Assembly (NCBI RefSeq): GCF_037042905.1
Contig: NC_087257.1
Span: 3,472,001 to 3,536,000, forward strand
From: Lytechinus pictus
Lineage: Eukaryota
Length of the DNA stretch: 64,000 bases
Reading direction: 5' to 3'
Shown here: in pieces, positions 28,635 through 59,465 of the stretch
How positions within the stretch are numbered: position 1 is the stretch's first letter
Layout of the letters: each line of letters starts with the position of its first letter
Made by a program: the position numbers and the translations under genes
The notes under the pieces: generated by a model
What the model saw: only the letters and a program-made list of their open reading frames with translations
Databases searched by the model: none
Told to the model about the DNA's origin: nothing

Positions 28635-29448
28635 ACATCTTCATGCATTGCCACTCTATCTTTAAAAATATGAGCCTCTTTATGTCTTTCATTTTCATCT
28701 CTGTTATAGGTTAATTGGTGAGGTCACCAATGTTAATAACAGCATAAGAGTTAGTATCCACACAAGCAAGGTCCACTGCAGAGTCCTAGGGATTAGAATG
28801 TGGCAGTTCATGTCAGGCATCTTCATTGTATAGCCACTCCCAATGTTAACGTATAATGATGCTCCTTTTTTTTATTTCTGTCATAGGTTGGTTCATTTGG
28901 TGACCAATTTTAATGTCAACATGAGAGTTGGGATCCACACAGGTAAAGTGCATTGCAGCGTCTTTGGGATGAGGAAGTGGCAGTTCGATGTCAGTTCAAA
29001 GACGTCTTAATTGCATAGTCACTCACACTATCAACCACGTTTGATGAGTCTCCTTTATTACCTCTTCAGTTAGTTGGTTTGTGGGGTGGCCAGTGTTGAC
29101 GTCAACATATGATTTGGCATCCTTTTAAGCAGGGTGCACTGCAGTGTCCTTGAGATTAGAATGTGGCAATTAGTTATCAGTCTTAATTGCATCGCCATTC
29201 AAAATGTATGCCATGCCTAATGAGTCTCTTTATGTCTTTCCTTTTTATCTCTATGATTGATTGGTTGGTGAGGTGACGATTGTTGATGTCAACATGAGAG
29301 TTGGTATCCAAACAGGCCAGGTGACCTGCAGAGTCTTAGAGATGAGGAAGTGGCAGTTCGTTGTCGGTTCAAAGACATCTTCATTGCATAACCACTCACA
29401 ATGTTAACCACGCCTAATGAGCCTCTTTCTCTTTTATTTCTGTCGTAG
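28635..29448 (+). pseudogene. Tandem array of 4 decayed copies of [intron 3' end + first ~105 nt of exon B]
   Basis: Exon-like starts at 28710, 28887, 29073, 29260 (real exon 29449); copy 2 reads [40 protein letters not shown]. Confidence 0.95.
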
Positions 29449-29607
29449 GTTGGTTCGTGAGGTCACCAATGTTGATGTCAACATGAGGGTTGGTATCCAC
29501 ACAGGCAAAGTGCACTGCGGAGTCCTGGGGATGAGAAAGTGGCAGTTCGATGTCTGGTCAAATGATGTCACACTGGCAAATATCATGGAGGCAGGCGGTA
29601 TGCCTGG
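29449..29607 (+). CDS. ADCY5: AC exon B (159 nt, C1a): [53 protein letters not shown]
   Basis: tcgtag| acceptor, |gtaagt donor; phase 2 matches exon A (TC+G=Ser). Confidence 0.97.
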
Positions 29608-31209
29608 GTAAGTCGATGGAACATGATTATGATTTCTATTATCCATCTGTGACCAGCAACTCCAATGCCAACAATAAGTCACCCAAATTTGCTTTTGAGA
29701 TTTTCCTTAGCTTTAAAAAGCATATTCTAAGCTTTAAACTGATATATGACTTGTCATAATTAGTCTACAATAACCCTTACAAGTACTTAGTGGAATGCAC
29801 ATTGCACAACTTTATCATTGAACATTTACATATGTGATTAGCATCCTGCGCACCCCTGATAAAAATATTTCATACCCGTTGTCTCCATTTTAATAACATC
29901 ACACATTCTGTACTTCATATTTTTTCTACATACATGAACTACCTTTTCCCAAATCCATTTTTTTTTAATATTTCTATCTTGATTTGTATTTATTGCTTTT
30001 AACTGAACTGTTTAATTTGCAAAATTTGAGTTGAGTATACTGCCATTAAAGTTATTCCCAGGGGTTAAATCCTGTTTGGAATGTACACAGAATATCTACT
30101 TTACCTTGAATTGAATATTCAGAGTGTTCTTCAATTGGTTCAAGAAAATTGAAGATAGATCTATTTTAGCCACAAATTCACCCTATATGGTGAGTCCCAT
30201 ATATGGCATGTTTTGTTTGCTAAAAGCCCTCTTCTTCTGTATCTCTTTCATTATTTCACTGATTTGGGAAAACCAAAATTGTGGAGGGAGACGCTGCTCT
30301 GAGATTGAAAGAAAATAGCTTGGAGTCTTTCCCAGTTTGGGACTGAACTAAGCATAATAACGATTAATATGAATCCGGCAACATAGAAGATCAAATGTTG
30401 CTTGTTGTGTGTGAAAAAAAGGATAATGCCCATTGCCACAGTGGTATGAGTGGCTTATTTTGCTCACTTGATATAGGTCTGTTTGTTGCTTGCAAGTAAA
30501 TGCTTCTTCTTCCATCGTGTGAGTGCTGCTCCAACGTGCTGGATATAAATGCTTGAATACATATTGCTTAAATAACATGCAAGCATTTTTATAGCATTTT
30601 TGGTAGTCTCTGTAAACGTTTTATTGTGTTTTGTGCTAGCAATTTAAGCATCTTCATTTCCCATTTCAAGGTTGCCGATGATTTATTCATGTTATATCTG
30701 TGATGAAATATTTTCTATTGAACTGAATGTCGTCTTGTGTTGACGTGCTCTAAGCATACAGTTAATGCAACAACTGTTGAATCTGAAATTACTAGCTTAT
30801 CAAGTCATCAATCATGGAGGCAAACGTTTGTCTTTAGATATTTCTAGAGTACCAGGCTAAAAGGAATTTTACCCAACATCAAGGTAGACATCGATTGGGT
30901 TTGTCTGGAAAGGCATATTCTGTCATTGAGTTATCACTGGCAGTCTCCTCCCGGTCGATAGCCTGCGCCCAGGAATTCTCTTATCGCAACCTGTGATCCC
31001 ACGTAAACACTTCATTGTCACCTCCGAATGAGAAAGGGGGCAATCGTCCACAGCACGGCGGGTCACGGGGCACCGGAAACGCAGAGCAACACTTTCCTTT
31101 GGAGGGTGCACGGTGCATTTCTGCAGCGACACTGTGCCTCTTCAGATTCAAAAGTCCGGAGGCTAGATCACGTGTGTGTCATTCCGCAGTATATTGTGTT
31201 TTCGTCATT

Positions 31210-31710
31210 TATCTCTGTCTCTTCTTCCTCAGTTTACTTGTCTCACTTTTCTGCATTCTAAAGACCTCTCTAGTTCCCTTTCTCCACTTTCCTCCCTTAC
31301 TTTCTCTTTTTTGTTTCTGCCACTCTCCTCATCTCTCCTTTGTTCCTTTTTTTACTCCACATTTCCCACGCACTGTCATCTTGTTCTCGTTATTTCTCCC
31401 TTCCTCTTTTCCTCTCTCTTCCTTATTCCTTTTCTGTCTGACTAACGTTTCTCTCTTTTTCTTCTTCTCTCTTTCTCTTTTTCTTCTTCTCTCTTTCTCT
31501 TCCCCCTCTCTTTCTCTTTATTTTTATTCTGTCTGCTGCCTCCCCTCTTTCTCCACTCCTCTGTTCTTTACCCCAATTCCCTACTCCTCCCTGGTTTTCT
31601 ACCCCTCCCCCTCTTCGTCTCGTTCTTTACCTCCTCCTCCTTCTCCTCCTCTTCATCCCTCCATTTTTCTTTCCCATTCCCTCCTCTCTTTCTCCCATTC
31701 TTTTATTTCA
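31210..31710. repeat. CT-rich low-complexity tract
   Basis: Composition; explains the 232-aa ORF. Confidence 0.9.
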
Positions 31711-31899
31711 TGATTGGAGGACCTGTAGACCAGTTTGATTTTTTTCCCCTCCTCTTGCCCATGGGGGTCTGTTGACCTCCCTCCCCTCCTCCATCTCTTG
31801 TTCACAATCCACTACTTTCCTGTCACTCTCACCATTACATTCTGTCAGGTACCCTAAATATCCCCTTGCCTTTTGAGTTGCCTCCGCTCCCTTGCCTCT

Positions 31900-32315
31900 C
31901 TCCAATACATATTTCACAAAAGGTGCCTTCATGGCCAATCAATCACAACAATACCTGTAGATTACAAGAACTTGCTTAAGCCTCATAATACTGGATTTTT
32001 TCTTCATTTTTTGTGTGTTTGTTCATACCTACCCTAACCAGACAAAGTATTCTGAATACCTGCCTGCCTTCAACTTGTTTCTGACTTGCCGCCCTTTTGT
32101 TTTTCTCCAATGCTTTGTCACAAAAATTGCTTTTATACCCAATCAATCAAAACATTACTTAAAAATTGCAATAACTGACATTCAGGCCTGAAAATACCTG
32201 ATCATTGTATTTTGTGTGTGTTCAAATCCACCTGAACCAGATAAATTACTGTAGTTTCTCCAATGCTAACCTTACAAAAGGTGTTCTCATACACAATCAG
32301 TCATAACAGTAACCA
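31900..32315. repeat. ~150-205 bp tandem duplication, about 2.3 copies
   Basis: ctccaat...acaaaa...caatca(a/g)tca recurs at ~31900, 32105, 32258. Confidence 0.7.
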
Positions 32316-32339
32316 TAACTTTATAATAATTATAATGTC

Positions 32340-32615
32340 TTAGTTACCCAGGGTAGCCACTTCAGTTATAAAACTGCTCGACCAGCAGGCCTTTCATAAA
32401 ATGATAAATGAATAATAATAAATAATATAGGATTTATATAGCACACATGTCCACCCTGTTTGGTGCTCAAGGTGCTCCTATATTACACTAAAATAACATG
32501 ACATCATATTATTAACCTTCTTAAATTTAAGAGCAGAACACCAAGCAAAAAGGCAGAAGGTTCCACTTTTTAAAGTCTTTGGTATGACTCGGCCTGGGGA
32601 TGAAACCCCGACCAC
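32340..32615 (-). mobile_element. Cluster of SINE fragments (two tail types plus a Meta-like core/head)
   Basis: ttacccagggtagccacttcag matches the reverse of ~47138-47157; ggtgctcaaggtgctcctatatt; aaagtctttggtatgactcggcctgggga. Confidence 0.65.
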
Positions 32616-32689
32616 ATGATTCCTGTTAGAAGACACAGCAGAGACTTTTGACAAGGAACCTTATTTTACCGTAAATAGCAAATTAGTCT

Positions 32690-33050
32690 ATTACCAACTC
32701 TTCCACTCATCACATGGTCTAACTACATTTAGTTTAATGCCATTCCATCCATCAACATTTCGTCTTTTGGTCAAATAACCATTTGGTCCAATCATCACTT
32801 CGTCTTACCACGAGTTCGTCTTTGACCATTTCGTATCATAACCAGTTGGTCTAATATCCATTTAATTTTTTTTGTTTTGCCCAATTAACATTTATTCCCA
32901 TTAGACCAAACGGTATATGGACTATATGGACCAACTGGTTATTGGACGAAAAGGTGGGAGGACAAAATGGCACTTAGACCATGTGGATAGTGGATGAACT
33001 GATGGTAGACCAATTGATAGTAGACAAGTTGACGAATTGGACGACTTGAT
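32690..33050. repeat. Quasi-palindromic interspersed repeat (ttggtc/ttcgtc arm versus gaccaa/gacgaa arm)
   Basis: Inverted motif arrays. Confidence 0.65.
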
Positions 33051-34658
33051 AAACCTATTTTACACATTTCCAATGTTCCCTTTTCTTATCAAGTCTAGAT
33101 ATGTCATTCCTCTCATATCATCACTTGCTTATCTACCGATTCCCACACTCGCTCTCTAACATTCCCTCATCACCAACACCCAACCACGACGACGGTTGCC
33201 AAGCCTCTCGGTCCTCAAACACAATTTATCGGAAGTCGGGTTCTTAGGGAGGGTGCTTATAAACGGGTTTGATTTCCTTTATTTCTAATGATCGAATCAG
33301 ACGGTTGCAGGTCTGTGACTCTTCTAGAATATCCCCTGGCGGTATTGATAGAGGGGCAAGGACCTGCCTCCTTTTCTTTCTTTAAAGGGGGAACTGACAT
33401 CGCAGGAGCTACAGTACACATTCCCCCATAGGCCTATTGATTGCTACATTCTGTTTCAGTGGCTAATTTGTTCACATTTTGAATATCGGTGCATCTGATT
33501 TTAGCAGGTGTTTCTGCATTGATTGATAAATGAAAACATAAATTCACAGTAATCATATATATAAAAAAGCATACAAAAAAGAAATCAAAATACAAATGTG
33601 ACATTTACAATATAACAATAGATAATAGACATAATTCACATAAATAATATAAACAAGTACAAATATTTATAAATGCAGGGCCAGCTATCGTAAGAAAACG
33701 CATTGAGAGATAAAAGTAGGATAAACATGTATACTATGTATTCTTATGATGTAATTTTTCTTTCTTTTTTCAGATGAGGTTGATGATTTTTTTATAATTT
33801 AATTAAATTCAATGAATAATATTACCATTTTATTGTGTATGCTTCTACTCATACACTAATAGAGTCATGAACCACAATGCATCATTTTTCATTGAGCTGC
33901 ATATATATATCTATATGCTATGCCTTCTTATTATCTCCGTTTGATCTTCCTTGGCATGGTATATCAATGTTATATTACACTGTTGTCATGGCGAGACTTG
34001 CTGCTTGATCTGTAGGGGCTGGATTTCAAGAATCATTTGTGAGAAATGAAAGGTACATTAAAATGTAACTGGCCTTTTTAGGTTACATAACATTCCTCCA
34101 TTACATCCTAGCATGTAGTATATTTACTGAAGGTAATCGGGGTTGGGGGGCTTGTTAGCGCTAAATGTCATATGTTCATAGCTGGTGTGTGTTCATTTGT
34201 ATTATTCAAGGAAGAGTTAATGCTCTTTTGGCCCTGAGTTTTATAAAGCACTCTATCATGTGATCGTTATGTTCTCCCCCTGTCTATTTCCTTCTCTCAT
34301 TCTCTTTTTCTTGTTCCCTTCTATCTCCTTTCACTCTCTCTGTTTTCCACCTCTCTTTCTCTCTCTCCCTCCCATCAGTAGGTATGTTTCTTGATTGCTA
34401 ACATGCTGAGACTAATATTTACCTCGACTCAAAGTACATTGGCTTTATCGACCTGGCAGAAGTGCTTAAAAGCCATTCATGTGCTGTTTATGTCCTTCAC
34501 TAAAAGTTTAGATAGCTAGACTTAGGTGTGTTTTCAGGATCAAAAGGGCTTACAGTAGTTTTCCCAACTGTCCTGTTTTACAATAGATCTAGTAGCAACA
34601 CCACCTTACGATATTGTCAATCATCCTATTGAAATGTCAGTATAACAGACTCCTGACC

Positions 34659-35005
34659 CACTGTAAGCACAGGGTGTTCAAACTGACTCCAGTTGGTGTC
34701 CAGAGAGGACCACAGATTGAGGTGTTAAAATGACACCCTAGAGTTTGCACACAACACCCACAGACTGAGGTGTTAAAATGTTGCCCTAGTGTTAAAACAT
34801 AACACCAAAGGTGTGTATTAACACCCACAGACTGAGGCGTTTTAATTACACCCTAGAGTTTGAATAATAACACCAAAATATGTAAAAATAACAAAGGTGT
34901 TTATTAACACCCATAGACCGAGGTGTTAAAACTACACCTAGAGTTTGAACATATTATCAAAATATGTACAAGTTAAAGGTATTTATTAACACCCATAGGT
35001 GTTGA
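34659..35005. repeat. MITE remnant with internal tandem units (cagactgaggtgttaaaatgacaccctagagtttg)
   Basis: Visible repetition. Confidence 0.75.
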
Positions 35006-35199
35006 ACTAAGACCACAAACGTAGCACTGAATTTTTGATACGAAATTCTGTGTAATTCCTAGGTTTGATGGCATTACCACTTTTTCCCCCCAAAAAATAA
35101 AAAAATGAGTATTTCTTCAAGTAGGAATTTCTCTACCATTTTTTTTTTCTTCTTTTCTCGTTCAGAGGTACTTCATTCTTCATATTCTTTTCTCATCAT

Positions 35200-36050
35200 A
35201 ACAATTTTTGTCGAGACACATTTTGTGTAGATTTACAAAAGAAGTTACATACCGGTATACTCATAGACAGTAATCATCAACTAATTAATCAAAGTTTAAT
35301 CTTTAGTTAATTAAAGTTTCTCTATCGGGTTAAAGCTCTTTGAACATCTTGAATTAAATGAACTTTGGATTGAAATCGCCATTTTACATAAAAAAGTATC
35401 TCATTCTTGATGAACTCATACCAAATTGAAAATACATTAAAAGCTCTTCCTTATATCTTATACATGACATAGGATTTGTATATTGCATATTGTGCAAATA
35501 TTATAAACAAATTAACCAACATAAAGTTGCGATCTTGACTTTGAACAATGTAGTTTCGTTAATAGGAATTGTCATTTTAAACTTAAATTGGCAACTAGAT
35601 TACATTCTAAGATAATGTGAACGAAAGTTTCTTCTGCTTCACAGAACATAGAAGAATTTTTATTAGCTAATTTCCATTGACATAAGTTGAATTCAAAGGG
35701 TAATAAATTGTGAAGCATTTTCAAGTTATATCGTTGAACCTTGTTTTACTTCAAATACTTTAGTTTGAAATTTAAAATGTTTTGCCTTTCAATGTTTAGT
35801 GGTAATCCTAATTTAGATTTCCAGTAATGTAAAATTCACCATTTAGATATTATTTTTTTGTATTCCTTGGGTTTTAGTGCAGTACCATTTTTTTCTATAA
35901 AAAAAGTATTTCTTTGAGTTTAATGTTGAAGGGATTTCACCCATATATTTATACACGTGCATTATTCCCTTGTTTGCTTACAGTCCATGGGTCGTTCATT
36001 GTTCAATAAAGTGAACCATTGTTGACATTTTGGCATGAAGATGGTCTTTT
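35200..36050 (-). mobile_element. Decayed L1/Tx1-type LINE ORF2 C-terminus (zf-RVT-like)
   Basis: Minus strand reads LHNLLPFEFNLCQWKLANKNSSMFCEAEETFVHIILEC; boundaries approximate. Confidence 0.7.
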
Positions 36051-36639
36051 CAATGTTTTTTTCAATTTCTCACAAATTTAGATGATTCATAAATAAATGT
36101 TGTTAGTATTGTTAGTATCTCATAAAAGTAACACTAGAATTAAGTATGAAAATAAAGTGGTTTCCTTATGAGCCACCAAAAATTCAGTACAATGCATTCC
36201 GTAAGAAGATTTCGTGCAGCATGTATAGTGAGAGGGTACAACAGAGCATAAACCCTGTAAGGTAATAGCATTTGAGTAATTGAGGTTAATTAGATTTTAA
36301 TCATCCTCTTCATCTTGTTCTTAAATGCCCAATTAAGATATATTAGGTCTCATTATAGAGCTAATGGCATTCATCAAACAGACCTGGTTCTCAAATGTGA
36401 TGTATTGTATAGTGCTACCAAATAGTAAATGGAAGGTGTACATGAATATCACTTGTCCGATATAATACTCAAAGTGATAACAAACTCTTCTACGATGAAC
36501 AGTTGTGTTTGTTTCTGTTTTGTGGTACCTGTATGACCTTAATTTGGGGATATGTTTCATGGCAGTTTTATTTATTTAAGATATGTGAGATTTTTTAGCT
36601 AATTTTGGCTAATCACAAATGACATGATGGTATAGAATG

Positions 36640-37020
36640 TGATTATGATGAGGAAAGAGGGGATAATGATGGTGATGACGATGGTGACGATTGTAATCAA
36701 TCTCATATTGGTGATGATGATGATGAATTGATGATGATGACTTTAGTTGTGGTGGAAGTGATGATGATTATTGTCGATGATGATGTTTTTATTGCCGTTG
36801 TCATGATAACGGTGACCATGATGATGTTGATGGTGATGAGGTGATAATGATTGTGTTGGTTTGGTTGTGACTATGATGATGATTATGATGGTAGTGGTGG
36901 TGATGGTGGTGATGATGATGATGATGATATTAGTAATGATCATGATGATGGAGATGATGACAACAATTACAGCAATTGATGATTTAAAGTGATGATGATG
37001 ATAAGGTTGATGGTGATATT
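36640..37020. repeat. (GAT/GGT)n microsatellite; similar triplet tracts at 12063-12190, 17878-17955, 53500-53700
   Basis: Visible. Confidence 0.9.
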
Positions 37021-38246
37021 CTCAATAATGCATCATCTAACGATAATGCTTAATCTTAAGTAGATATGAATGTAGTGATACCTTTATTTGCATTTTAACA
37101 TATTTCCCCCTCCCCTACCTTATTTACCTCACTTTATCTCTGTCTTCCTCTCTATCTCTCTTTCTCTCTCCCTTTGTAATTTTTCCCTCTGGCCCGTAAT
37201 CTGAAGTCGGATTTAATTTAAACTCCAGTCTGAAGTTGTGGTTTAACTATGGATAACCAATTGTGATATAAATCTCTAACAGTAGAGGTTCAGGATATCA
37301 GCTCATTTGACTCACAAATCATTCTTAACTGTCTGGGAACACAATAAGATAGTTGTCATCATTTAAAAAAAATTGGGAAAGCACAGTAAACATACCATGT
37401 AAAAATACATTTTACACTGTTGGCTTTCTTTGATTTAAGCACAAAGTTGGACCATGGCCTAAGTTAAACCTGACTTCAGCAAACAGGGCTCTGTGTCTCT
37501 ATCACTTTTTCTCTCTCTATATATATTTTAATTTTTGGTCACATGCTCTGAGGCAAGGGAAGTGAGCTTCATAATGTTTGGTAATGTTCAATTGGAATGG
37601 CTCCCACAGTCCCACAGGCAGGTTGTTAACATGAATAATACATGGATCGTGTCATTGCAGTTTGCATCTGAGAGGACCAGAGTATTGCTTCGTCAACCTG
37701 CTTTTTTTAGCTTAGCAGATTTAAATAGATGTTAAGAAATGAAATTCAAATACTAAAGAAATGCAGAGTGGAAGAAGGGGTAGAAAATCTGAGGAGGAGG
37801 GTCTAGGGCGGCCACAAAATGCTTTTGAAAGTGGGGGGAATAAGGGTGATCATGTGAACAATCAAAATAAGTTGTTAATTTTCACGATTTAGTATATATT
37901 CTATACCTCCCCCCCAAAAAAGGTGGGGTGATTGAAGCCCCCATCCTCAAATTGGTGGGATCTGTAATAATGGAAATGATGGCATATAGAGACAGAGAGA
38001 GACGGGTAGAGAGAGAGGGGGGGGAGAGACAGGCAGACAAAAAGAGAGATACAGAGAGAGCTGTAGAAGAGATTGTCAGAGAAAGAGGAAAAAAAAGACC
38101 TGAGACTCCAAGAGTAAGAGACAAACAGATCGTGGGAGCGACGGGTAAAAAGAAAGAAATTTGGGAGACAGCAAGATTAATTCTTGCATTTTTAATCGTT
38201 TCGCCAATGCACCTCATTGATCTGAACCGAGAATTGAATGATTATA

Positions 38247-39227
38247 CAGTGCGTATCAAAAAAAAGTTTACACTTAGAAAAAGTCCTGTAAAATTATACA
38301 TTTGTAATATCCTGAAGATTTTTCCACATTTTAACATTGTTACAGATCCATTAAAGCATATGAAGATATAAATGTCAAAAAATATTTCCGCTTGAGTGAG
38401 CACCACTTACTGTTGAAAAGTTTGTGAAAAATGATTTGCGCAGAACTTTGAAATAGTTATGCGAATAAAAGTAGACGTTAATCATGAAGAACACATGGAA
38501 TTTAGCTAGTAAAATTGATTTGAAGATATCTTTTACCTTTTTAAACTTGTTTACTTGCCTAAAACACTTTGAAGAATGCCATTGCGCCCCAACCCCACTC
38601 CCCCACACGCCTAGGCCATCCTGACGATATTTGCTTTACACGGAGCTGTGATTTTCATGAAATGGCTTAGGCTTGATTTTCATTTTGTTAATCATTGTCA
38701 AGCTTGGGAAAAGTGTGGAGAAACAAGTATTAAATGAAAAATGAAATATAAACCCACTTTAAGTGATAAAAATGTAGTGAAAAAATGTTGGAGATGTCTG
38801 ATATAAGCTTTTGTTTAAATTTAGTTATGTCCTCAGATCCAGCTGGCACAAATAGGGTAAAGATTGTGCTCACTAAGTGTTAACATTTTAATTTTGGTGG
38901 CATATTGTTACAAAATGTATCCGTTTTATTTTATTGACTCAAAGTGCAAGGGAAATGTATGAGAAATGTTTCGCAGGGTTAGTTTGATTTTGCCCTTTCC
39001 CTTTGACACGGTGAAAACGAGCATTTCTGCACAAACAGATAAGATTTCTGCGAGCTTTACAAAAATGGACAGTGCTCACTCAAGTTTAACATTTTGTCAA
39101 AATATTTACTTTTATTGGATAGATGAGACCCAAACCAAAGAATATATGTGGAAAAATTACCCACATGTTGTATATTTTTTAATTCCCGGGGCTTTTTCAA
39201 AGTGTAACCTTTTTTTGGTATGCACTG
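38247..39227. mobile_element. Non-autonomous Tc1/mariner-type element (TA TSD)
   Basis: ta|cagtgcgtatcaaaaaaaagtttacacttagaaaaag ... ctttttcaaagtgtaaccttttttttggtatgcactg|ta. Confidence 0.9.
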
Positions 39228-41011
39228 TATATGTGATGATGCTCCTGTGTATTGATGTGTTTGGTACTATTGTCATGAAAGTTTAGGTCACACCCTCTTA
39301 AGGAACAAAAGCGGGATAACAGTGTCATCCAGTGCAGTTATCAACATGAAAATTGTATCGAACCCTGCGGCAACGGTGTGGAACATGTAAGAGAAGCAAG
39401 GTGGGAAGGTGTAATTTTCAGGTCTCGGTGGTTGGGAGTGATTTTGATTTCATGTGTTACGCTTTAGTTTGTTGCGCAGGAGAGATCATGGGTTGATTCG
39501 ATTGATGCAATCATACATGCATGCCCTACTTGTTTTTCATGTGCCAAACAGTATCGAGGCCTAGATCATCTGATTTGATTTGATATTACTTCATTGATCC
39601 AAAAGTAGAGGAAAAAAATACTAAGTACATGAACATAATGACAGACTAAGATAAGCCCAGAACACTTTGCATTTATGTCAATACTGGGTAATAATATAAA
39701 TGTACAGTAGTTTTTCATTTAGTTTTTTGGTATTTTGCATCCCCTCCCCCTTCACACTAGTGTTATTGCATGTATTTAATCATATTTTTTTCTATCTTTC
39801 CCGATGGTTATTCTGTCTTTATAATCTTCAATTCATTTATTTTACTTCAATTTCATTTGAGTATCTTATGCTTGGATACAATGTGTATTCAATAAGTTAT
39901 GATGAATATTATGAATCATTATTTCTTTTATTGAGAGATTATTTTTCAGATTATCCTAGATACCTAGCAGAATTAATTCCTTGAATGCACTGAACAGCAG
40001 AATGAAAAGAGTGGCAGCTCAAGTTTAAGCTGGAAGAGTAATATTTGTGCATTGTATCCTCTGGATAGAGTGCGACTTAATTCCAATTATTATTAAAATA
40101 CATATTTTTTTATACGTAGGAGCAAGATGGTAATAGGATTAAATATTTCAGCTGGATGATAAGACGAGGGAATGAGGAAATGGTGGCCAGGAGAAGGAAT
40201 GGAGGGAGGGTGCAGCATTTTGAGTGCATGAGNNNNNNNNNNNNNNNNNNNNNNNNNNNNNNNNNNNNNNNNNNNNNNNNNNNNNNNNNNNNNNNNNNNN
40301 NNNNNNNNNNNNNNNNNNNNNNNNNNNNNNNNNNNNNNNNNNNNNNNNNNNNNNNNNNNNNNNNNNNNNNNNNNNNNNNNNNNNNNNNNNNNNNNNNNNN
40401 NNNNNNNNNNNNNNNNNNNNNNNNNNNNNNNNNNNNNNNNNNNNNNNNNNNNNNNNNNNNNNNNNNNNNNNNNNNNNNNNNNNNNNNNNNNNNNNNNNNN
40501 NNNNNNNNNNNNNNNNNNNNNNNNNNNNNNNNNNNNNNNNNNNNNNNNNNNNNNNNNNNNNNNNNNNNNNNNNNNNNNNNNNNNNNNNNNNNNNNNNNNN
40601 AAAAGAAGAAAGAACATGTTTCAGGAAAATAAAAAGATGGTGAGTAAGAGTCACATGTAAGTACACAGTCTCAAGAGGATGCATGATATTGCGTATAAAT
40701 CAATATTAATATCATGTGCACATCTGCATTTAAGCCTGACTCTTAAGTCACTCTTACATCTTTGTTAAACACCCCCAGGAGTGCATAAGAGATGTGCTTA
40801 ATATTGACAAATAATTGTAACTTTTGTACATGGTTCCCAATAGACTTTTAGCCACGCTTAATTGAACAATGGATCATCTATACATCTATATTTCATGCTG
40901 TTATACAAGGTCGGGTAGAGGAAGAGGAGGAAAGCCAAAATAGAGAGAAAAAATAAAATGTGAGAGATAAGATTCTCAAGGGCAGGTGCAAGGGAAAAAA
41001 AAGCAGAGAGG

Positions 41012-41486
41012 AGGTGGTTTCAGACCGCCTCGAAGTTCGTCAGTTCCAGGTATTTTCTGATCGGGAAATTTACCAGAGCAGAAAATACCAGGTTATATTG
41101 GCAATGTGAAAGCAAATTACACGCAATATCCCCGAAAGAAAATACCCACTAAATAGTAGGTACTTGGCAAAATTACGAGAACTTTCACGGGGATTTTTCC
41201 AAGGTCGCAGGTATTTTGGCAATGTGAAAGCAATTTTCGGGAACTTTTAGCCCAGCGTGTAGTTGGGCGCGGGCGCCGTGGCTGGCTGCTAAGCTAATGG
41301 TTTTGAATCTCGCGCCTTGCCTGCTTATCAGACCATACTGCGCATGCTCCTGACTTCAGGAATTTATCCAGAAGGGTATGTTTCGGGGCGGTGTGAATGC
41401 AGGAATATTTAATGGGTATTTTTAGCATTAAAAAGTTCTCATAATTTAACGGGGATTCTTATGATCGAGGCGGTTTGAAACCACCT
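41012..41486. mobile_element. MITE with 22-bp TIR
   Basis: aggtggtttcagaccgcctcga ... tcgaggcggtttgaaaccacct. Confidence 0.88.
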
Positions 41487-43739: not shown

Positions 43740-43874
43740 GTAAGTTGTAGCTTTCATATCTATTCATCACATTTTGAATATATGATGAATTCAATTTTGC
43801 CAACCTTAAGGTATCACTATATAAGCATTGGACTAACAACAAGCGAATTCATAGTAAAATAAATAAGTGAATAA

Positions 43875-44990: not shown

Positions 44991-45181
44991 ATATGGGCAT
45001 TTTCACGTCACAATTTTACACACTTTTCCTTGTGTGTATGATTATCTCTAAAACAACAAATGATGGGAGTTTGCTTAAAAGAAAACTCCCATCATTTATT
45101 GTTTTAGAGATAATCATACACACAATGAAAAGTGTGTAAAATTGTGACGTGTAACGTCAGTTACCGTGAAAATGCCCATAT
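44991..45181. mobile_element. Near-perfect palindromic MITE
   Basis: atatgggcattttcacg ... cgtgaaaatgcccatat, arms complementary up to a short loop at ~45080-45092. Confidence 0.88.
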
Positions 45182-47212: not shown

Positions 47213-47347
47213 GGATGATGAAAACCAATGGTTCTCTACATAATTTCAGAGGGGGGAAACAATGTAAATGTACTGGGTGTTTATGCATGTTTTAGTAAAT
47301 ATGAAAGTCACTCTTTTAATGGCCATTAATGACATTTTTTCACCCAG

Positions 47348-47504
47348 GTTGGGTCTTGATAAGAACCAGGAGAAGACTGACCCGGAGGAAGAGGTGAATG
47401 AATTCTTAGGTCGTGCCATCGATGCAAGGAGTATTGACAGGTTGAGATCAGAACATGTCCGCAGGCTCACGCTTACTTTCCTTAAAAAAGATCTGGAAGA
47501 AAAG
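47348..47504 (+). CDS. ADCY5: AC exon E (157 nt, C1b): [52 protein letters not shown]
   Basis: cccag| acceptor, |gtgcgt donor; AC5/6-type C1b motif. Confidence 0.95.
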
Positions 47505-48294
47505 GTGCGTGTAGTGATGACCTACTGTTATTTAACTACAGATTAACGTGTACTAACTTGAAAGAAGAGCTTCAGAAATATTTTAGTTTTAGTTTCTAAT
47601 GCTACACCGCGATTAGGTAACCACGATGATAAAGTGACTTTCCAGAGTATAATGTTCCACTGATTTATGAAGAGCTCCTTCTCAATGTGTTGTTGTTTTT
47701 TTAATACTTTTGTGAAAGTAAATTTTAGTACCAGATAAAGTCACTGCTTATCATGACATATGGCCTTATTCTTTTTCCCCATAGTCTATTTATGCCACCT
47801 TATTTTATCTAAACAAACATTTTTCTGTCATTAAAAATCATTATTTTGATTTCGTAAAATACAATATTGCAGTTGTTGATGTTCCAGAGACATTTCACAA
47901 AGTTTTAAGTCAGGCTGAATATAACATTTAAAGTATAGTTGCATATGGTTTATAATGCATCACCGCATTGGTCAGATCATGCACAGAGGACCTGTGCTAC
48001 CGTGTATAAATCAATCATATAAGTTGGTCCTTAGGCATAAGTTTGAATCAGACTTTGTAAAGCAACCCCTCATATATCGGCAATCATCAAAGAAACATGT
48101 TCCAAGTTATTTATTTATTCAACATATTTATACAGGATTAAAAAGAAACGATCGATTCAGTAAGGCTCTGTTTCATTGATGTCCTGTTAAAGCACATATA
48201 TGCATACATCAAAATCATTTCCAGTTACAATGGCGATCTCAAAGTTGTGTAGCAGTATACTGATGAAATGATCTTTTATATTCCCATCATGCAG

Positions 48295-48392
48295 TATTCT
48301 AAGGTTCGTGACCCCATGTTCAGTTCTTACATGGTTTGTGCACTTCTCATCCTCATCGCCATATGCCTTGCACAGGTTGTTGCCTTCCCTAA
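48295..48392 (+). CDS. ADCY5: AC exon F (98 nt, TM7): YSKVRDPMFSSYMVCALLILIAICLAQVVAFPK
   Basis: tgcag| acceptor, |gtaagt donor; hydrophobic helix; in frame. Confidence 0.92.
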
Positions 48393-48895
48393 GTAAGTAT
48401 CATATGCCTTACACCATTGCATATGTCATTGACTTCCTAAGTATCATATTGCCTTTTACTATTGCCCAGGCATTCTCTACCAACTATCTTATCCTTAATA
48501 ATGATTTTGCCTTCCTATTGCCTTCCCGAAGTAACCATTATATGTACAAACAATCTTGCATATGCTGTTGTCCTTCTGTAATATATTCTTAAAGGTGATT
48601 TTTGCCCTATATCGATATCATGTATAATAATAATTATTATTATTTATTTATATAGCGCTTCATACATTGGTTTCTAAATGCTTAATTATTATTACCCCAG
48701 TCATAGGATCATAGGTCATATATCTTCCACATGTTTTTGCCTCCCCGAAGTATTAAAGCATCATTATCATAATTATGTTTTAATGTTGCATATGCAGTTG
48801 TCTTTCCTTTGTAGTTTATGTTTTGATAAGGATTTTGCCTTTAAATGTAACTATCATATGCCTTGAATCATAAGGCATATGACCTTGAAATGATC
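48393..48895 (+). repeat. Degenerate repeats of the exon F 3' end/donor region filling the intron
   Basis: 48715-48752 matches 48358-48395 at 30/38 ungapped; recurring ttgccttccc(t/g)aagta and tatcatatgcctt motifs. Confidence 0.75.
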
Positions 48896-48932
48896 ATATC
48901 ATAACTTAACTCGCTTTATCTTTCCCTTTCAG

Positions 48933-51162: not shown

Positions 51163-51766
51163 CTAAAGGTCAAGTCCACCCCAAAAAAATGTTGATTTGA
51201 CTCAATAGAGAATAATCAAGCAAGCATAATGCTGAAAATTTCATCAAAATCGGATGCAAAATAAGAAAGTTATGACATTTTAAAGTTTCACTTATTTTTC
51301 ATAAAACAGTTATATGCACAATTTAGTCACTTGCAAATGACAGAGTTGATGATGTCCCTCACTCACTATTTCTTTTTTCTTTTTTTGAATTCAGCAATAT
51401 TTCAAGTTTTACAGATTTGACAATACGGACCAACTTGACTGAACCATAAAATGTTAAACAATGGTAATTCCACATGTTCAGGAAGAAATACACCATTGTT
51501 TCAAAGGACAATGAAAAGAAAATTAGAATATTTCTTTTTTCGTATAATAAAATACAAAAGAAATAGTGAGTGAGTGATGTCATCAGTCTCCTCTTTAGCA
51601 TTGCGACCAAGATGTGCATATAACTGTTCAATGAAATTAAGCAAAACTTTAAAATGTCATAACTCTCTTATTTTACATCCGATTGTGATGAAAGTGTCAG
51701 TGTTGTACTTGTTGGAATTTTCTCTTTTTATTCAAAACTTTTCTTTTGGTCGGGCTTGTCGTTTAA
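51163..51766. mobile_element. Kolobok-like MITE, same family as 8923-9497
   Basis: Extensive similarity; aggtcaagtccacccca terminus. Confidence 0.85.
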
Positions 51767-53196: not shown

Positions 53197-53199
53197 GTA

Positions 53200-53481: not shown

Positions 53482-53937
53482 CTGTATATAGAAGTTATTA
53501 TAGAAGTAGTAGTAGTAGCAGCAGCAGCAGCAGTAGTTGTAGTAGTAGTAGTAGTTGTAGTAGTAGTAGTAGTAATAATAATAATGATAATATTGATAAT
53601 AAAAATAATAATTATGATAATAATAATTATGATAATCATAATATAAATAATCATCATAATAACAATGTTAATATTAAATAATGATGATAATAATAGTAGC
53701 CTTTTACATAGCACCAATAATAATCAATTCCAGAGTGCACTTTTTTATATTTAAAAATCATTATTTGGGTTTCAAAAAGTCCTTTTTCATATCCAAAAAG
53801 AATAGCTTTGTTCCGAGTCCTTTTTTCCATATAAAAAACTAAACAAAACCCTTTTACCCCAGCTTTGTGACACACACCAGGTAGTGGATTCACTTTCACC
53901 ATTTACATTTATTTGTTTTCTTTCCTTTTCATTGCAG

Positions 53938-54113
53938 TACTTTACCTTTAGCATTTTGCTCATCATGCTGAGTTGCGCCGTGTTCCAGCAACTTGGCAGT
54001 CTGACAAAACTTATATTCCTTCTTCTAATTGGTGCAATATACCTTTCCCTTATGGAAACCATTCAAGTCAATCTACTCACAAACTATGATACTCTACAGC
54101 AAGCTTATGTCCA
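53938..54113 (+). CDS. ADCY5: AC exon J (176 nt, TM10-11): YFTFSILLIMLSCAVFQQLGSLTKLIFLLLIGAIYLSLMETIQVNLLTNYDTLQQAYVQ
   Basis: ttgcag| acceptor, |gtaagt donor. Confidence 0.94.
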
Positions 54114-54598: not shown

Positions 54599-54721
54599 AA
54601 TGTTAGAGCCTAATTACATCTCCCTGACGATAGTCACGCCTGTTATACTGGTCGTCTATATCGTCGCTCTATGGATACATGGGAGACAGGTGGAATCAAC
54701 AGCAAGGCTGGATTTCTTATG
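54599..54721 (+). CDS. ADCY5: AC exon K (TM12), 3' end lost in assembly gap: [40 protein letters not shown](W...)
   Basis: tcatag| acceptor; [12 protein letters not shown] motif runs into Ns; about 10 nt (rest of WKxQ) and the donor are expected in the gap. Confidence 0.93.
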
Positions 54722-55840
54722 NNNNNNNNNNNNNNNNNNNNNNNNNNNNNNNNNNNNNNNNNNNNNNNNNNNNNNNNNNNNNNNNNNNNNNNNNNNNNNN
54801 NNNNNNNNNNNNNNNNNNNNNNNNNNNNNNNNNNNNNNNNNNNNNNNNNNNNNNNNNNNNNNNNNNNNNNNNNNNNNNNNNNNNNNNNNNNNNNNNNNNN
54901 NNNNNNNNNNNNNNNNNNNNNNNNNNNNNNNNNNNNNNNNNNNNNNNNNNNNNNNNNNNNNNNNNNNNNNNNNNNNNNNNNNNNNNNNNNNNNNNNNNNN
55001 NNNNNNNNNNNNNNNNNNNNNNNNNNNNNNNNNNNNNNNNNNNNNNNNNNNNNNNNNNNNNNNNNNNNNNNNNNNNNNNNNNNNNNNNNNNNNNNNNNNN
55101 NNNNNNNNNNNNNNNNNNNNNNNNNNNNNNNNNNNNNNNNNNNNNNNNNNNNNNNNNNNNNNNNNNNNNNNNNNNNNNNNNNNNNNNNNNNNNNNNNNNN
55201 NNNNNNNNNNNNNNNNNNNNNNNNNNNNNNNNNNNNNNNNNNNNNNNNNNNNNNNNNNNNNNNNNNNNNNNNNNNNNNNNNNNNNNNNNNNNNNNNNNNN
55301 NNNNNNNNNNNNNNNNNNNNNNNNNNNNNNNNNNNNNNNNTAGTGATGATAGTGAAGGTGAAGGTGATGATGTTGATAATATATTTGCTAGTCTTCGCCA
55401 TATTCTTAGCCTAAGTCTTGTTAACACACTATTGAGTATTAAAATATCATATGTGGTCTCATGACTCAGATCTCCCAATCTGGGGAGCATTTCATGAAAT
55501 AGATAATTCTTTGTTATAAGCTACTGGGATACGTACATCATTGATCATCTCAGAACAAACTTATCAATAACTATTTCTTTCATGAATTGCTCTTTGGGCC
55601 CTATTTCATCAGGACTTACAGCTATTGTAACTTTGCCATCCAATGGTATCTACAATGATAGTAACAATGCTCTACGGCTGATCAAAATCAAGGATTTTAC
55701 AATAGTCACCATTGGATAACAAAGTAACTCTTTGTGAAGCTGGTCCCAAGTCGTGACACCATCACTGATTCTTTTTATTCATTGTTTGAATGATAAAGAG
55801 ATGGAACTCAAATGATTTCATGACGCTTCCCGTTTCCTAG

Positions 55841-56104
55841 GCAACAGAAGAGAAAGACGAAATGGCCAATCTCCAGGCCTACAACAAACGTCTCCTCAAC
55901 AACATCCTGCCGTCCTTCGTAGCCGAGCACTTCCTCAAGAATTCCGCCCGGGACATGGACCTCTACCATCGAGACAATGACTTTGTCGCCGTCATGTTTG
56001 CATCCATCTCAAACTTCTCAGAGTTCTACGTTGAGCTTGAGGCCAACAACGAGGGCGTCGAGTGCTTGAGACTCCTAAATGAAATTATCCATGACTTTGA
56101 CGAG
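55841..56104 (+). CDS. ADCY5: AC exon L (264 nt, helical domain/C2a): [24 protein letters not shown]...[16 protein letters not shown]
   Basis: tcctag| acceptor, |gtaagt donor. Confidence 0.97.
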
Positions 56105-56189: not shown

Positions 56190-56780
56190 TTAAAGGAGAA
56201 TGAAACCCTTGAAACCAGCTGTATCCATATCAAAGAGAAAAATCAAAGAAACATATTGTTGAAAGTTTGAGGAAGATTGAATGAATAATAAGAAAGTTAT
56301 GAGCATTTGAATATTGAGATCACTATGCCATGTAGATCCTCCTATTGGCAATGCGACCAAGATCTGTGATGTCACACACGTACAACTCCCTCATTACTTT
56401 AGTACTTATTTCACTTATATTCTCACTTTTATAGAGTCTATCACAAGGTGAGGTGTTCTCTTTATGAGAGGACAAGTACAGGGGTTTCACAACATTATAT
56501 CATTGATGAATTGTTTGTCATATGATTATAATGAGCAAAAAGAGATGTTTTGGGGTATATTTTCAGTGTCCAAAATGGGAGAGTTGTTCATCTGTGACAT
56601 CATAGATCTTGGTCGCATTGCCAATGGGAGGATCTCCATAGCATTAGTGATCTCGACATTCAAATGCTCATAACTCTTCTATTGCTAGTCCTATTTTACT
56701 CAAACTTTTGTTGATCTTATTCTTTGATTTTTCTGCTTTCACAAAAGCCAACTTGCTCCATGAGTTTCATTCTCCTTTAA
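56190..56780. mobile_element. Kolobok-like MITE (TTAA TSD)
   Basis: ttaa|aggagaatgaaac ... gtttcattctcct|ttaa with long inverted arms. Confidence 0.9.
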
Positions 56781-57324
56781 GTGGTTAATGTCACTCTAGC
56801 ATGGAACTTTTTATCATATACCTTTTCAAACGTCAGAGCCAGATGTTTCTCGCAGGAATCTTGCAAGCGGCTTTCATTCCAAATCTTCACAATTATCTTC
56901 GGCCGATCATCACAATTAACTTAGGCAACTTAATGGAGACTGCAGGAAAGTGAGAAGACGCATAGTATTTATAGCGAGATTCCTCCTGAAAATGGCACAG
57001 ACTAATGACAAGCGTTTATGACACCACCTATGAACAGCATTTGGAATATTATTAATTAATGGCAAGTTCATGCTATCCTGTCAAATCACAACTAAAAAAA
57101 AATCCCTCTCTGTTTCATAGAGATGTTTGAAAGTTATGAATGACTTTATGCTCGACTGGTGACCCTTTCTTGTTCTAAATGATAAATGTTCCAGTCATGC
57201 ATGAAGTTGTGCGCAACTTTGCAAACACTTTGACGAAACACCAGCTAAGGGAATCTGTCTTGATAAACAATTTATAGAAAACTTTATAATTCTTTTTTTT
57301 TTATACTTATTTTCATCTTGTCAG

Positions 57325-57529
57325 ATCATTGGACGAAATGACTTTATCCAGATTGAGAAGATCAAGACCATTGGCTACACCTACATGGCGGCCTCAGGGT
57401 TAACAGAAGAAACCTTTGACAAGGATGGCAACAGCCACGTCAGCGCTCTGGCAGACTTTGCCTTCTCCCTCATGAAACAGCTCAAATACGTCAACGAACA
57501 TTCCTTCAATAATTTTAAGATGAGGATAG
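57325..57529 (+). CDS. ADCY5: AC exon M (205 nt, C2a): [26 protein letters not shown]...[15 protein letters not shown]
   Basis: Not in the ORF track on +; gtcag| acceptor, G|gtaaat donor; adenine-specifying Lys in EKIKTIG. Confidence 0.96.
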
Positions 57530-57924
57530 GTAAATTCACCTTTTGATTTAATCTTATGAGAGATGTCAGTCTTCTTGCTTTTGCATGGTTTCAGTCTCTG
57601 ATATCTTCCCATTTCAGGCTTTATCGTGTATAGCTCATATGTGGCTTTAGTATATCTGGCCTCTTTTCAGGCCTGGTAAGATAAACTGTCATTTTTATTC
57701 AATTCAACGATACATCAATTCAAATCCGGGCTCTGTCACACTCCGTTTTGTAGTTTATTGATAAATGACAAAGACCAATCAGAATTAATATTTCAATAAT
57801 TATTGTTATTTATTATTATAAATATTTTATTCAAAACATAGAGCAGGAACTTGTGTTACGGGCCCCAGATCTCAGAGGACAAAACAAGAATACAATTTCA
57901 TGCTCTATATGTTGTTGAAATATG

Positions 57925-58112
57925 TCTTGGGAAGGCAATTTTATACATCTGTCACTTTCCACCCAGGTGTTGTAAATGATTAACCAGTAGTAGTAGGAAC
58001 AGATTCCTTGAATGCTTGAGCACCTGATCAGCGTATTCCAGAGCCAATGAAATAGTATGAAGCACTTATCAAGGGCGATATGTGTTTGAATTTTGTATGT
58101 TCTTATTATTAT
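57925..58112 (+). mobile_element. Old SINE remnant abutting the last acceptor
   Basis: ccacccaggtgttgtaaatg and ttccttgaatgcttgagcacctgatcag resemble the 2624-2868 copy. Confidence 0.7.
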
Positions 58113-58118
58113 TTTCAG

Positions 58119-58372
58119 GTCTGAATGTGGGTCCAGTCGTATCGGGCGTCATCGGTGCCCGCAAACCCCAGTACGACATATGGGGCAACACTGTCAACGT
58201 GGCCAGCCGCATGGACAGCACTGGAATACCTGAGAAGATTCAGGTCACTCAAGATATGAGGAACATCCTTCTTCCAATGGGATACAGGCTTACAGAGAGG
58301 GGCATCGTTAAGGTCAAAGGCAAAGGCGAGATGCTGACATACTTCTTGATCGGCCAACCGGGGGATTCATAG
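58119..58372 (+). CDS. ADCY5: AC terminal coding exon N (C2a): [35 protein letters not shown]...[19 protein letters not shown]
   Basis: tttcag| acceptor; catalytic Asp, Asn, Arg and Lys present; TAG at 58370-58372. Confidence 0.97.
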
Positions 58373-58393
58373 AATTTGGCTTGGACTCACTAA

Positions 58394-58672
58394 AGGCCTG
58401 GTCCCACCGGCCGTTGGACACAAAACGTATTCATAACGGATACAGCGGACAAGCAGAATTTCAGGGTGGCTCCATCCGTTTTTATCCCCTCCAGACAATG
58501 GACAAAATGGGCGAACAATGAAATCACAGTGGACGGATGCTCGATGGATATAGAGTGTACAAAACACGTAGGCAAAGTGTACACAACGGATACATAGCAT
58601 TTTCCAATGGATGGCAAGAATCTTTTCCGTTTTACATCCTCTCTGCATCCGTAAGTGCAGTGGGACCACTTG
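58394..58672. mobile_element. MITE just after the stop codon
   Basis: tggtcccac ... gtgggacca inverted ends, internal acggat/atccgt motifs. Confidence 0.65.
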
Positions 58673-58820
58673 TAAAAAGTTTGTGCCATGTCTTTTAGCC
58701 AGAGTCGTGGTGTAAAGATGCTATGTCTCTTTGCATGGTAGCTTTTCTGAATTTTCCCCATTATTCTGTCCCCGATGAAAATATGCGTGTGGGATTCCAC
58801 TAGGCTCTGCCATTTGACAA

Positions 58821-59465
58821 AGTGCATAAAGAGGGATATCATTAAGGTCAACAGGAAAAGAAGATGCTGCCGTGCTTGTTGATTGGTCAATTGGGGGACC
58901 CAAAGAATTTGGTACAGACTCGATGAGAACTGAATGATCAAGTTAAAGGCAAAAGAGAGATGTTGACATATATCTTGGTAGGCTAGCATAGAATTGGGTA
59001 CAAAACCAGCAAGAAGGGAAACATCAGGGGAAAATGATGATATACTGATAGAAATTAGAGGGGCTATGTTAAGTTTATTAGGAAACTGAAGATGCTTACC
59101 ATGTTCTGCCAGCCAAGGGAAGTTATAAAATGGGAAAACAGACTCGCAAAGAGGGGTATCATTGTTGGGATCAAAGGAAAAGGGTAAATGATGAGGTTCT
59201 CATCAATCTCTCAACTGGGGGATTCAAAGAATTGGTACAGTCTCAAGTTCAAGGGGCATCGTTAAGGTCATCAGGAAACTGGAAATGTTTACATAAGTCT
59301 TTGATCAACTAGCCAAATGGGAAAACAGACTCACAAAGAGAGTAATTGTTTGGGTCAAAAGCAAAGGGGGAATGATGAGATACTTGTTGATTTGCAACCA
59401 GGCAATCCAATTCTCAACTTTGGGGACATTGCTAAGGTCAAAGGGAAGGAGGAGATGTACATTCG
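58821..59465 (+). pseudogene. About 8 decayed tandem copies (roughly 45-100 nt) of the last ~30 codons and stop region, in the 3' UTR
   Basis: Copy at ~59325 reads NRLTKRVIVWVKSKGGMMRYLLICNQ versus real [25 protein letters not shown]; recurring ggggga(t/c)(t/c)caaagaatt and taaggtca. Confidence 0.88.

Follow-up and report, generated by a model that had tools for sequence, protein, structure and literature searches.

At this locus four exons of a single adenylyl cyclase gene are accompanied by degraded tandem copies of their own edges (hereafter echoes), which raises the question whether such copies form a layer of splicing control or are the debris of local duplication. The gene lies on the + strand of the window, i.e. 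the whole stretch of 64,000 nucleotides that was analysed, and belongs to the class III membrane adenylyl cyclases, AC5/6-like, with two catalytic domains, an AC linker domain and transmembrane blocks. Its exon peptides match the Pfam families PF00211 and PF06327, the former on both the C1 and the C2 catalytic exons (exon B, E 2e-16; terminal exon, E 7.5e-30), and the closest solved structure to the terminal exon is that of AC type 5 (8sl3, E 1.9e-43), 13 orders of magnitude ahead of all others, in line with an AC5-like enzyme. The exons are collinear with full-length cyclases in tblastn, from which their order was taken; the N-terminal exons fall outside the window, and 11 known exons were counted.

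Those that matter here, all on the + strand, are exon A, ending at 13834 and joined in RNA to 29449; exon B (29449–29608, C1 catalytic domain, LVREVT...MEAGGMPG), with both edges marked by RNA ends; exon C (43599–43739, tblastn), to whose start, 43599, the loose end of an RNA contig maps exactly; a transmembrane-region exon (48295–48392, YSKVRDPMF...AQVVAFP), located by tblastn, with its edges read from the sequence; two further tblastn-defined exons at 54600–54721, cut by an assembly gap, and 55841–56104; and the terminal exon (58118–58372), which carries the C2 catalytic domain and ends in the stop.

Anatomy of the exon-edge arrays

That four cyclase exons are flanked by decayed copies of their own edges, as a sequence-only reading had claimed, was confirmed by self-BLAST and nhmmer. 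The array at exon B consists of five units, beginning at 28670, 28847, 29033, 29220 and 29409 with a spacing of 177–189 bp, the last of which contains the real exon. The four upstream copies, in the number reported earlier, are acceptor-side echoes of ~185 bp each (28670–29408, + strand; nhmmer E 5e-17 to 3e-29), made up of ~70 nt of upstream intron and the first ~113 nt of the exon, and 74.5–84.7% identical to the real exon part. Searching the genome with this array returns only its own locus and a single exon of a paralogue, and this uniqueness rules out exon capture by a transposon or a dispersed-element origin. Exon C likewise has the two upstream copies ascribed to it, acceptor-side echoes at 43205–43310 and 43453–43575 on the + strand (nhmmer E 4e-10 and 1e-15), which match the exon's first 65 nt at 83–84% identity and are split by a dispersed repeat at 43312–43454.

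Donor-side copies had been placed downstream of an 'exon F', which most likely corresponds to the non-catalytic exon 48295–48392. Three weak + strand echoes of this exon (48516–48577, 48714–48803 and 48820–48890; 10.8–12.9 bits in nhmmer, against 0 of 300 dinucleotide shuffles reaching 8 bits) comprise its last ~36 nt, the donor and ~46 nt of intron, and all three are located inside the 540-nt intron 48393–48932. Exon 55841–56104, the other candidate for the same label, was rejected: neither BLAST nor nhmmer finds echoes of it, and the similarity nearby is an unrelated intronic inverted repeat (56190–56395 versus 56574–56780).

Downstream of the terminal exon the array proved real, while its count had to be lowered from about eight copies to seven units by iterated nhmmer. 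These stop-side echoes on the + strand (58822–58921, 58914–58995, 59057–59120, 59133–59235, 59250–59314, 59316–59408 and 59423–59465; E 3e-8 to 3e-21) represent the last ~95 nt of coding sequence together with the stop and are 73–82% identical to the terminal exon. They are not adjacent to the stop: a 279-bp SINE-like dispersed repeat (58390–58668, strand unassigned), inserted 18 nt after it, and ~150 bp of unexplained origin (58669–58821) intervene. The SINE was recognized by its genome copies, with at least 983 first-look candidates genome-wide, of which the 40 that were scored are 89–93% identical. Since neither AATAAA nor ATTAAA occurs upstream of 59747, the 3' UTR is the probable location of the stop-side echoes. 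If the insertions are left out of account, the exon C and terminal-exon arrays are contiguous, save for the ~150 bp at 58669–58821.

In all four arrays the units are same-strand, head-to-tail and beside their source, and the unduplicated remainder is attached to the intact exon, which is the last unit of an acceptor-side array and the first of a donor- or stop-side one. The earlier statement that units never hold a whole exon stands, as the far part of each exon gives no nhmmer match in the arrays, and nhmmer detected no copies on the opposite side of any of the four exons. TRF, at default settings or even with a minimum score of 30, detects none of the four exon arrays.

Two assembly gaps fall within the span of the finding. 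The one at 40233–40600 is situated in the intron between exons B and C, far from every array, and its flanks are collinear in one transcript, because 29608 and 43599 are directly adjacent in a single RNA contig. The other (54722–55340) removes the 3' end of exon 54600–54721 and touches no array; judged from aligned homologues, ~4 residues (WKLQ) appear to be missing there before exon 55841, and continuity and frame across this gap are presumptive.

Splicing and decay of the echoes

RNA of organisms A and B joins exon A (13834) to 29449, and 29608 to 43599. Both edges of exon B are exact ends of eight RNA reads and two RNA contigs (one per organism), and a contig's loose end maps exactly to 43599 at exon C, not to an echo. 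At exon B and at the acceptor of exon C, the arrays accordingly leave the mature RNA as it was, with splicing confined to the intact unit. No echo acceptor was used, and no coverage fell on the exon B echoes, in the ~8–9 junction reads of one run and the two contigs, a low depth at which decoy use in less than ~1/4 of transcripts, or products degraded by NMD, would be missed. The inspection of junction reads proposed earlier thus returned canonical junctions alone, in RNA obtained without NMD inhibition. It had also been suggested that the splice sites of the copies were later pruned by selection, which finds no support: echoes 1 and 2 of exon B and echo 2 of exon C retain AG and a strong pyrimidine tract. 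Only in the proximal exon B echoes is the aligned AG lacking, echo 4 having none and echo 3 displaced ones alone.

Changes private to one echo number 11, 7 and 7 at codon positions 1, 2 and 3, i.e. the decay appears blind to codon position. Pairwise echo-to-exon differences are commoner at third positions (27% versus 18% and 13%), an excess that is attributed to multiply-hit columns and to change in the real exon rather than to constraint on the echoes; because both are counted repeatedly in pairwise comparison, the echo-private test was preferred. For exon B the identities of echoes to the real exon given above exceed most echo-to-echo identities (70–81%), as would be expected if the selected exon is nearly frozen and each echo decays alone. 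Stops occur in exon B echo 3 and in the exon C and terminal-exon echoes; echoes 1, 2 and 4 of exon B have open frames of 33–47 codons with cyclase-like peptides, and echo 2 even scores as PF00211 inside the intron in the genome search. Later transposable elements have interrupted two of the arrays, namely the SINE at the terminal exon and the dispersed repeat at exon C. In terms of k-mer shares, DNA runs of the related organism B hold 6–11% of the 31-mers of the echo array, which suggests that the array is at least partly present there in diverged form.

Background rate and origin

How exceptional such arrays are was judged from local repeats, defined as same-strand matches of at least 45 bits and counted for non-coding anchors of 280 bp and for coding anchors. 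The comparison of exon with intronic anchors called for earlier gave 2 of 78 control coding anchors (~2.6%; rough 95% interval ~0.3–9%) versus 11 of 156 non-coding anchors elsewhere (7.1%) and 9 of the window's 101 (8.9%); with the latter two rates so similar, a locus-wide duplication hotspot was rejected. The non-exonic tandem arrays already noticed in the window were recovered at 19453–20027, 31899–32248, 43862–44145 and 59781–59958, and further ones are found at 3035–3450 and 34710–34998. Both control cases (L071 and L015) are acceptor-side, junction-spanning, upstream arrays of two units in which the intact exon is the one joined to its remainder. Moreover, in a PAH-like gene on C19 the exon 10674752–10674907 is preceded, just upstream, by three partial copies of itself (10675008–10675553), with the same polarity as in the cyclase arrays; the process acts genome-wide.

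We consider it probable that the echoes are neutral junction-spanning tandem duplications, of a known kind, that splicing ignores. The neutral reading, which the sequence-only reading had itself favoured, agrees with the common local repeats, the echoes at other genes, the codon-blind decay and the canonical RNA junctions. Tandem duplications of 65–190 bp, arising by replication slippage or unequal exchange, would by chance straddle one exon edge, and of all exon-overlapping duplications this single-edge geometry alone would be harmless. The copy joined to the unduplicated remainder of the exon would continue to be spliced and translated as before; the other copies, having no opposite splice site or lying past the stop, would not be defined as exons and would come to reside in intron or 3' UTR. 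Such exon definition may also be the reason why intact decoy acceptors are ignored. From the single-edge geometry it follows that no unit should hold a whole exon, and that acceptor-side arrays should lie upstream and donor- or stop-side arrays downstream. An existing array could gain units by unequal exchange, and its units would then decay neutrally and be broken up by transposon insertions. Consensus-like acceptors may persist under neutrality at 15–25% divergence, and a functional decoy would look alike.

A rival reading is a regulatory layer, in which decoy splice sites, NMD-coupled poison exons or stepwise way-points in the 14–16 kb introns would tune cyclase dosage. This layer, put forward earlier in its decoy and poison-exon form, would draw on the retained AG and pyrimidine tracts of exon B echoes 1 and 2 and exon C echo 2, on the stops that use of an echo would introduce, on the GT following the exon B acceptors (AG|GTTGGT), which is loosely recursive-site-like, and on the nominal enrichment of four arrays in one gene. 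At the depth available, however, no echo junction was seen in RNA, the eight loose-end reads and one contig from each of the two organisms all being placed at real sites; the decay of the echoes appears blind to codon position, and AG is lost in exon B echo 4; unrelated genes carry similar echoes; and the stop-side array is devoid of splice logic. We regard the regulatory layer as improbable, and as decidedly improbable the narrower proposal that the retained acceptors (exon B echoes 1 and 2, exon C echo 2) are used at low level or tissue-specifically for NMD-targeted transcripts, or as recursive-like 3' splice sites. If the regulatory reading were true, exon-edge duplication would have given an AC5-like gene a tunable splicing brake, chance alone would not account for its four arrays, and a new route to evolving dosage control would be at hand. 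Mutually exclusive alternative exons giving cyclase isoforms might be read from the open frames of 33–47 codons in exon B echoes 1, 2 and 4 and from the PF00211 score of echo 2. Yet every unit is without the exon's other end or donor, several contain stops and none appears in RNA, which leaves this alternative next to no chance and upholds the earlier verdict that these are not Dscam-type exons.

A neutral process for which the cyclase gene itself is a true hotspot, by virtue of slippage-prone pyrimidine tracts or of long introns with little deletion, has a small chance of being right. Something specific to the gene is conceivable because echo-bearing exons (at least 35 bits) make up 4 of 11 there, above the 2 of 78 controls, while the non-coding rate of the window is not raised; the Fisher p of ~0.002, calculated by hand, is nominal, the gene having been chosen post hoc from 785 windows. 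The arrays also reach 3–8 units, as compared with 2 in both control cases. On the other hand, a hotspot is at odds with the resemblance of the window's non-coding local-repeat rate (8.9%) to that elsewhere (7.1%), and the base rate of 2 in 78 is poorly known. That collapsed or mis-joined haplotypes or reads produced the arrays in the assembly could be suspected from the two gaps, but is highly improbable: the units differ by 15–35%, with indels and transposon insertions of their own, unlike haplotype duplicates, neither gap touches an array, and part of the echo-array 31-mers is common to the DNA runs of the related organism.

Relation to known systems and significance

Internal gene duplications whose extra copy is spliced out were reportedly described by Gao and Lynch in 2009. 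Intragenic tandem duplications removed by splicing form a described class that has been discussed for intron gain (Lehmann et al. 2010, PMC2891723; Hellsten et al. 2011, PMC3265369) and was reviewed by Yenerall and Zhou (2012, citing Gao and Lynch 2009; PMC3443670). The echoes share with it the overlap with coding sequence, the rescue of the transcript by splicing at one copy of a duplicated signal and a leftover that is non-coding and decaying; they differ in that an existing junction or stop is duplicated and no new intron arises, and in having 3–8 units instead of two. Intron gain by a duplicated exonic AGGT was itself dismissed, the exon structure being collinear with homologues and existing introns or UTR being merely lengthened. 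Tandem exon duplications, together with unannotated exon copies in adjacent introns, have been documented by Ivanov and Pervouchine (2022, PMC9013439). Like these and Dscam-type exons, the echoes place exon-like sequence in the same orientation in a neighbouring intron or UTR, but tandem exons are whole, carry a splice site at either end and are frequently expressed, whereas echoes are one-ended, stop-bearing and absent from RNA. With poison exons and decoy sites they have in common intronic splice-site-like sequence whose use would bring a premature stop, in contrast to which they show no detected RNA use and decay codon-blind. The closest likeness in dimensions is to the non-exonic minisatellites and local tandem repeats of the window (units of 65–200 bp, identities of 70–88%), except that one unit of each echo array is kept near-constant by selection as an exon, so that older copies stay recognizable for longer than in an ordinary minisatellite.

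The value of the finding is mainly practical and illustrative. The cyclase-like peptides of the echoes, one of them a PF00211 match in an intron, constitute an annotation trap, as gene predictors can call false exons from them. In addition, the arrays illustrate survivorship: the exon-hitting duplications that are observed all straddle one edge, and the rule that no whole exon is copied needs no function to account for it. They also amount to a natural experiment in splice-site choice, in which splicing passes over near-consensus acceptors that precede the real ones by 123–740 nt within long introns. Finally, they document a mode of intron and UTR growth, by which a 540-nt intron and, probably, ~640 nt of 3' UTR came to be made in part of copies of the gene's own exon edges.

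The adenylyl cyclase gene and its exons

The window lies on contig C13 of an assembly of 812 Mb and consists of AT-rich eukaryotic DNA; its plus strand carries a gene for a class III membrane adenylyl cyclase, the exon peptides of which are matched by the Pfam families PF00211 and PF06327. The closest solved structure to the terminal exon is adenylyl cyclase type 5 (8sl3, E 1.9e-43), with AC2, AC8 and AC9 at about 1e-30. Full-length cyclases found with the terminal exon as query match the gene exon by exon in collinear order (tblastn), and alignment to them places, all on the plus strand, the end of exon A at 13834, exon B at 29449-29608, exon C at 43599-43739, further exons at 47340-47510, 48295-48392 (non-catalytic), 48933 onward, 53935-54096, 54600-54721, 55841-56104 and 57322-57531, and the terminal exon at 58118-58372; exons A and B, and exon C at 43599, are also placed by RNA. 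The 5'-most cyclase exons lie upstream of the window. The C2 motif at 57361-57399 has a tyrosine where aligned vertebrate AC5/6-like sequences have a serine; the tyrosine is also present in a representative cyclase (P0010). About 200 bp past the exon A donor (13834) begins a 15-bp minisatellite, CTACTTCTACATCTA, with some 114 copies at 14040-16080 and a GC skew of -0.56, by far the largest repeat of the window.

Neither of the assembly gaps at 40233-40600 and 54722-55340 overlaps any array discussed below. The former lies deep within the intron between exons B and C; an RNA contig connects 29608 with 43599, so the sequence on either side of this gap runs collinearly within a single transcript. 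The latter starts exactly where the exon 54600-54721 (...ESTARLDFL) stops; as homologues have four extra residues, WKLQ, before the ATEEK of the next exon, the end of this exon (about four last codons and the donor) presumably lies within the gap.

Anatomy and decay of the exon-edge copies

Decayed partial tandem copies of an exon edge, here called echoes, accompany four of these exons, and their similarity to the exons is beyond chance. Exon B is preceded by four units of about 185 bp each (28670-29408; echoes 1-4 start at 28670, 28847, 29033 and 29220), recovered by self-BLAST, a repeat search, alignments and nhmmer and comprising about 70 nt of intron and the first ~113 nt of the exon (nhmmer E 5e-17 to 3e-29), and exon C by two, at 43205-43310 and 43453-43575, between which a repeat with other copies elsewhere in the window (self-BLAST) interrupts the array at 43312-43454. 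Both sets are as the sequence-only reading had described them. It had also counted about eight copies downstream of the terminal exon; the array is there (58822-59465) and holds seven units, each derived from the last ~95 nt including the stop. Donor-side copies assigned to an 'exon F' would correspond to three weak ones (10.8-12.9 bits; 48516-48890) within the 540-nt intron downstream of exon 48295-48392, none of 300 dinucleotide shuffles exceeding 2.4 bits, and alignment and nhmmer found no echoes at exon 55841-56104; because three of the four exons had been called catalytic and 48295-48392 is non-catalytic, this is probably the exon meant. In agreement with the claim that no unit holds a whole exon, the far part of each of the four exons has no copy in the arrays, and the opposite side of each exon carries none. 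The intron after exon 55841-56104 contains an inverted repeat unrelated to the exon (56190-56395 and 56574-56780; 205 bp, 78% identical), which looks like a MITE or hairpin.

About 450 bp separate the stop from the terminal-exon array. Most of this space is filled by one 279-bp, young SINE-like element (58390-58668, 18 nt past the stop; a first look at the genome gave 983 or more candidates, and the 40 scored were 89-93% identical), so that the array was probably once contiguous with the exon. The exon B array, by contrast with a captured-exon transposon, is found at a single locus, the sole other match in a genome search being one exon of a paralogue; an origin by such capture is thereby ruled out.

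In the exon B array each echo is 74.5-84.7% identical to the real exon, whereas most echoes are less similar to one another (70-81%), as would follow from near-complete conservation of the selected exon and independent decay of each echo. Substitutions private to a single echo are spread 11/7/7 over codon positions 1, 2 and 3, a distribution that speaks against coding constraint on the echoes; stops are present in B echo 3 and in the echoes of exon C and the terminal exon. The excess of third-position differences in pairwise echo-exon comparisons is attributed to multiply-hit columns and is not taken as evidence of constraint on the echoes.

Transcripts and the frequency of local repeats

The copies had been read either as debris of neutral duplication or as a layer of decoy splice sites and poison exons. 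An AG with a good pyrimidine tract is retained in B echoes 1 and 2 and in C echo 2; the AG is displaced in B echo 3 and lost in B echo 4, and the donor-side copies have kept GT and lost the +5 G. Two rRNA-depleted runs of organism A and two contig sets were placed on 28300-29900. The last 30 nt of exon A directly abut 29449 in eight reads of one run (X21) and in one 1014-nt contig (set X1), which past 29608 continues for its next 30 nt as an exact match from 43599 on, where the exon C echo differs at several positions; a contig of the related organism B spans 29449-29608 with three differences. On the echoes of this interval RNA forms neither joints nor loose ends and reaches no meaningful depth; overall coverage is low and could miss minor or NMD-degraded isoforms. 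A regulatory role of the echoes is thus not supported, and the reading as neutral duplication is well supported, also by the private substitutions, by the commonness of non-coding local repeats and by echoes at unrelated genes. In organism B, 6-11% of the 31-mers of the echo array are present in DNA runs, against ~35% of those from the terminal exon and UTR in RNA runs, which points to the presence there of the array, at least in part, in a form more diverged than the exon and UTR. Just past exon B, 29648-29787 resembles 18106-18251, and its very high RNA contig depth in organisms A and B (up to 367) marks it as a repeat of an abundantly transcribed family. At 29500, the third base of a codon in exon B, five of nine X21 reads carry C>T, probably a heterozygous or population polymorphism.

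Local repeats were measured as the top same-strand BLAST match between an anchor and the 1.44 kb on either side of it. For non-coding anchors of 280 bp, the score was at least 45 bits at 9 of the 101 within the window and at 11 of the 156 from 78 loci elsewhere in the genome; local direct repeats are therefore common, and the locus is ruled out as a duplication hotspot. The non-exonic arrays that the earlier reading had named are all real (self-BLAST). Foldback elements occur at 8920-9500, 25825-26436 and 51164-51765 (mutually related, 70-77%) and at 45001-45154 (a 93.5% palindrome).

Control coding anchors, 78 exons of other cyclase and kinase genes, reached 45 bits twice; the cyclase gene itself has a local repeat at 3 of 11 known exons at 45 bits or more and at 4 of 11 at 35 bits or more. 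Against the controls this gives a nominal, hand-computed Fisher p of ~0.002, which is post hoc (the gene was selected from 785 windows with notes) with a poorly known base rate, and exon-anchored copies can be recognised over roughly double the time span of neutral pairs; clustering beyond the base rate is for these reasons suggestive, not established. In both control positives (loci L071 and L015) the copy spans the junction on the acceptor side and, read along the gene, precedes the real exon. A PAH-like gene on the minus strand of contig C19 has three extra partial matches (profile positions ~100-149, at 10675008-10675553) just upstream of its real exon 10674752-10674907 (positions 115-166), while a search of the aromatic amino-acid hydroxylase family found no partial copies at its three paralogues (tandem ones at 10.62 and 10.70 Mb, another at 5.18 Mb). 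Exon-edge echoes hence form a sparse class, spread over several unrelated genes of the genome. Elsewhere, Helicase_C-like segments of one profile range recur every 500-660 bp at C5:27209147-27210450 and several times within 7.5 kb at C8:36344043-36351768, and may represent a repeated element or else tandem arrays of domains or gene fragments; C7:28966763-29009091 is a tandem gene array with at least 11 near-identical kinase-domain matches ~4.0-4.3 kb apart.

Probable origin by duplication across exon edges

The protein would in most cases be altered by a tandem duplication that is confined to an exon or copies all of it, whereas one across a single exon edge can leave it unchanged. On the acceptor side, the downstream copy would stay attached to the remainder of the exon; on the donor or stop side, the upstream copy would. 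The remaining copies, having no opposite splice site, should not be defined as exons in long introns, according to the exon-definition model. This geometry, together with purifying selection, would yield exactly the observed pattern of echoes. Further units may have been added by unequal exchange, the offsets of two and three units between exon B copies (self-BLAST) pointing to block events, and transposons would have inserted afterwards.

The echoes are a tidy example of an already known kind, intragenic tandem duplication, and are grouped with the tandem duplications within genes treated in the intron-gain literature (PMC2891723, PMC3443670, PMC3265369); they are distinct from the duplications of whole exons that PMC9013439 surveys. 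Unlike the intron-gain duplications, they create no intron. Existing introns grow longer instead, and so, probably, does the 3' UTR, to which the terminal-exon array would belong since no poly(A) signal lies upstream of 59747.
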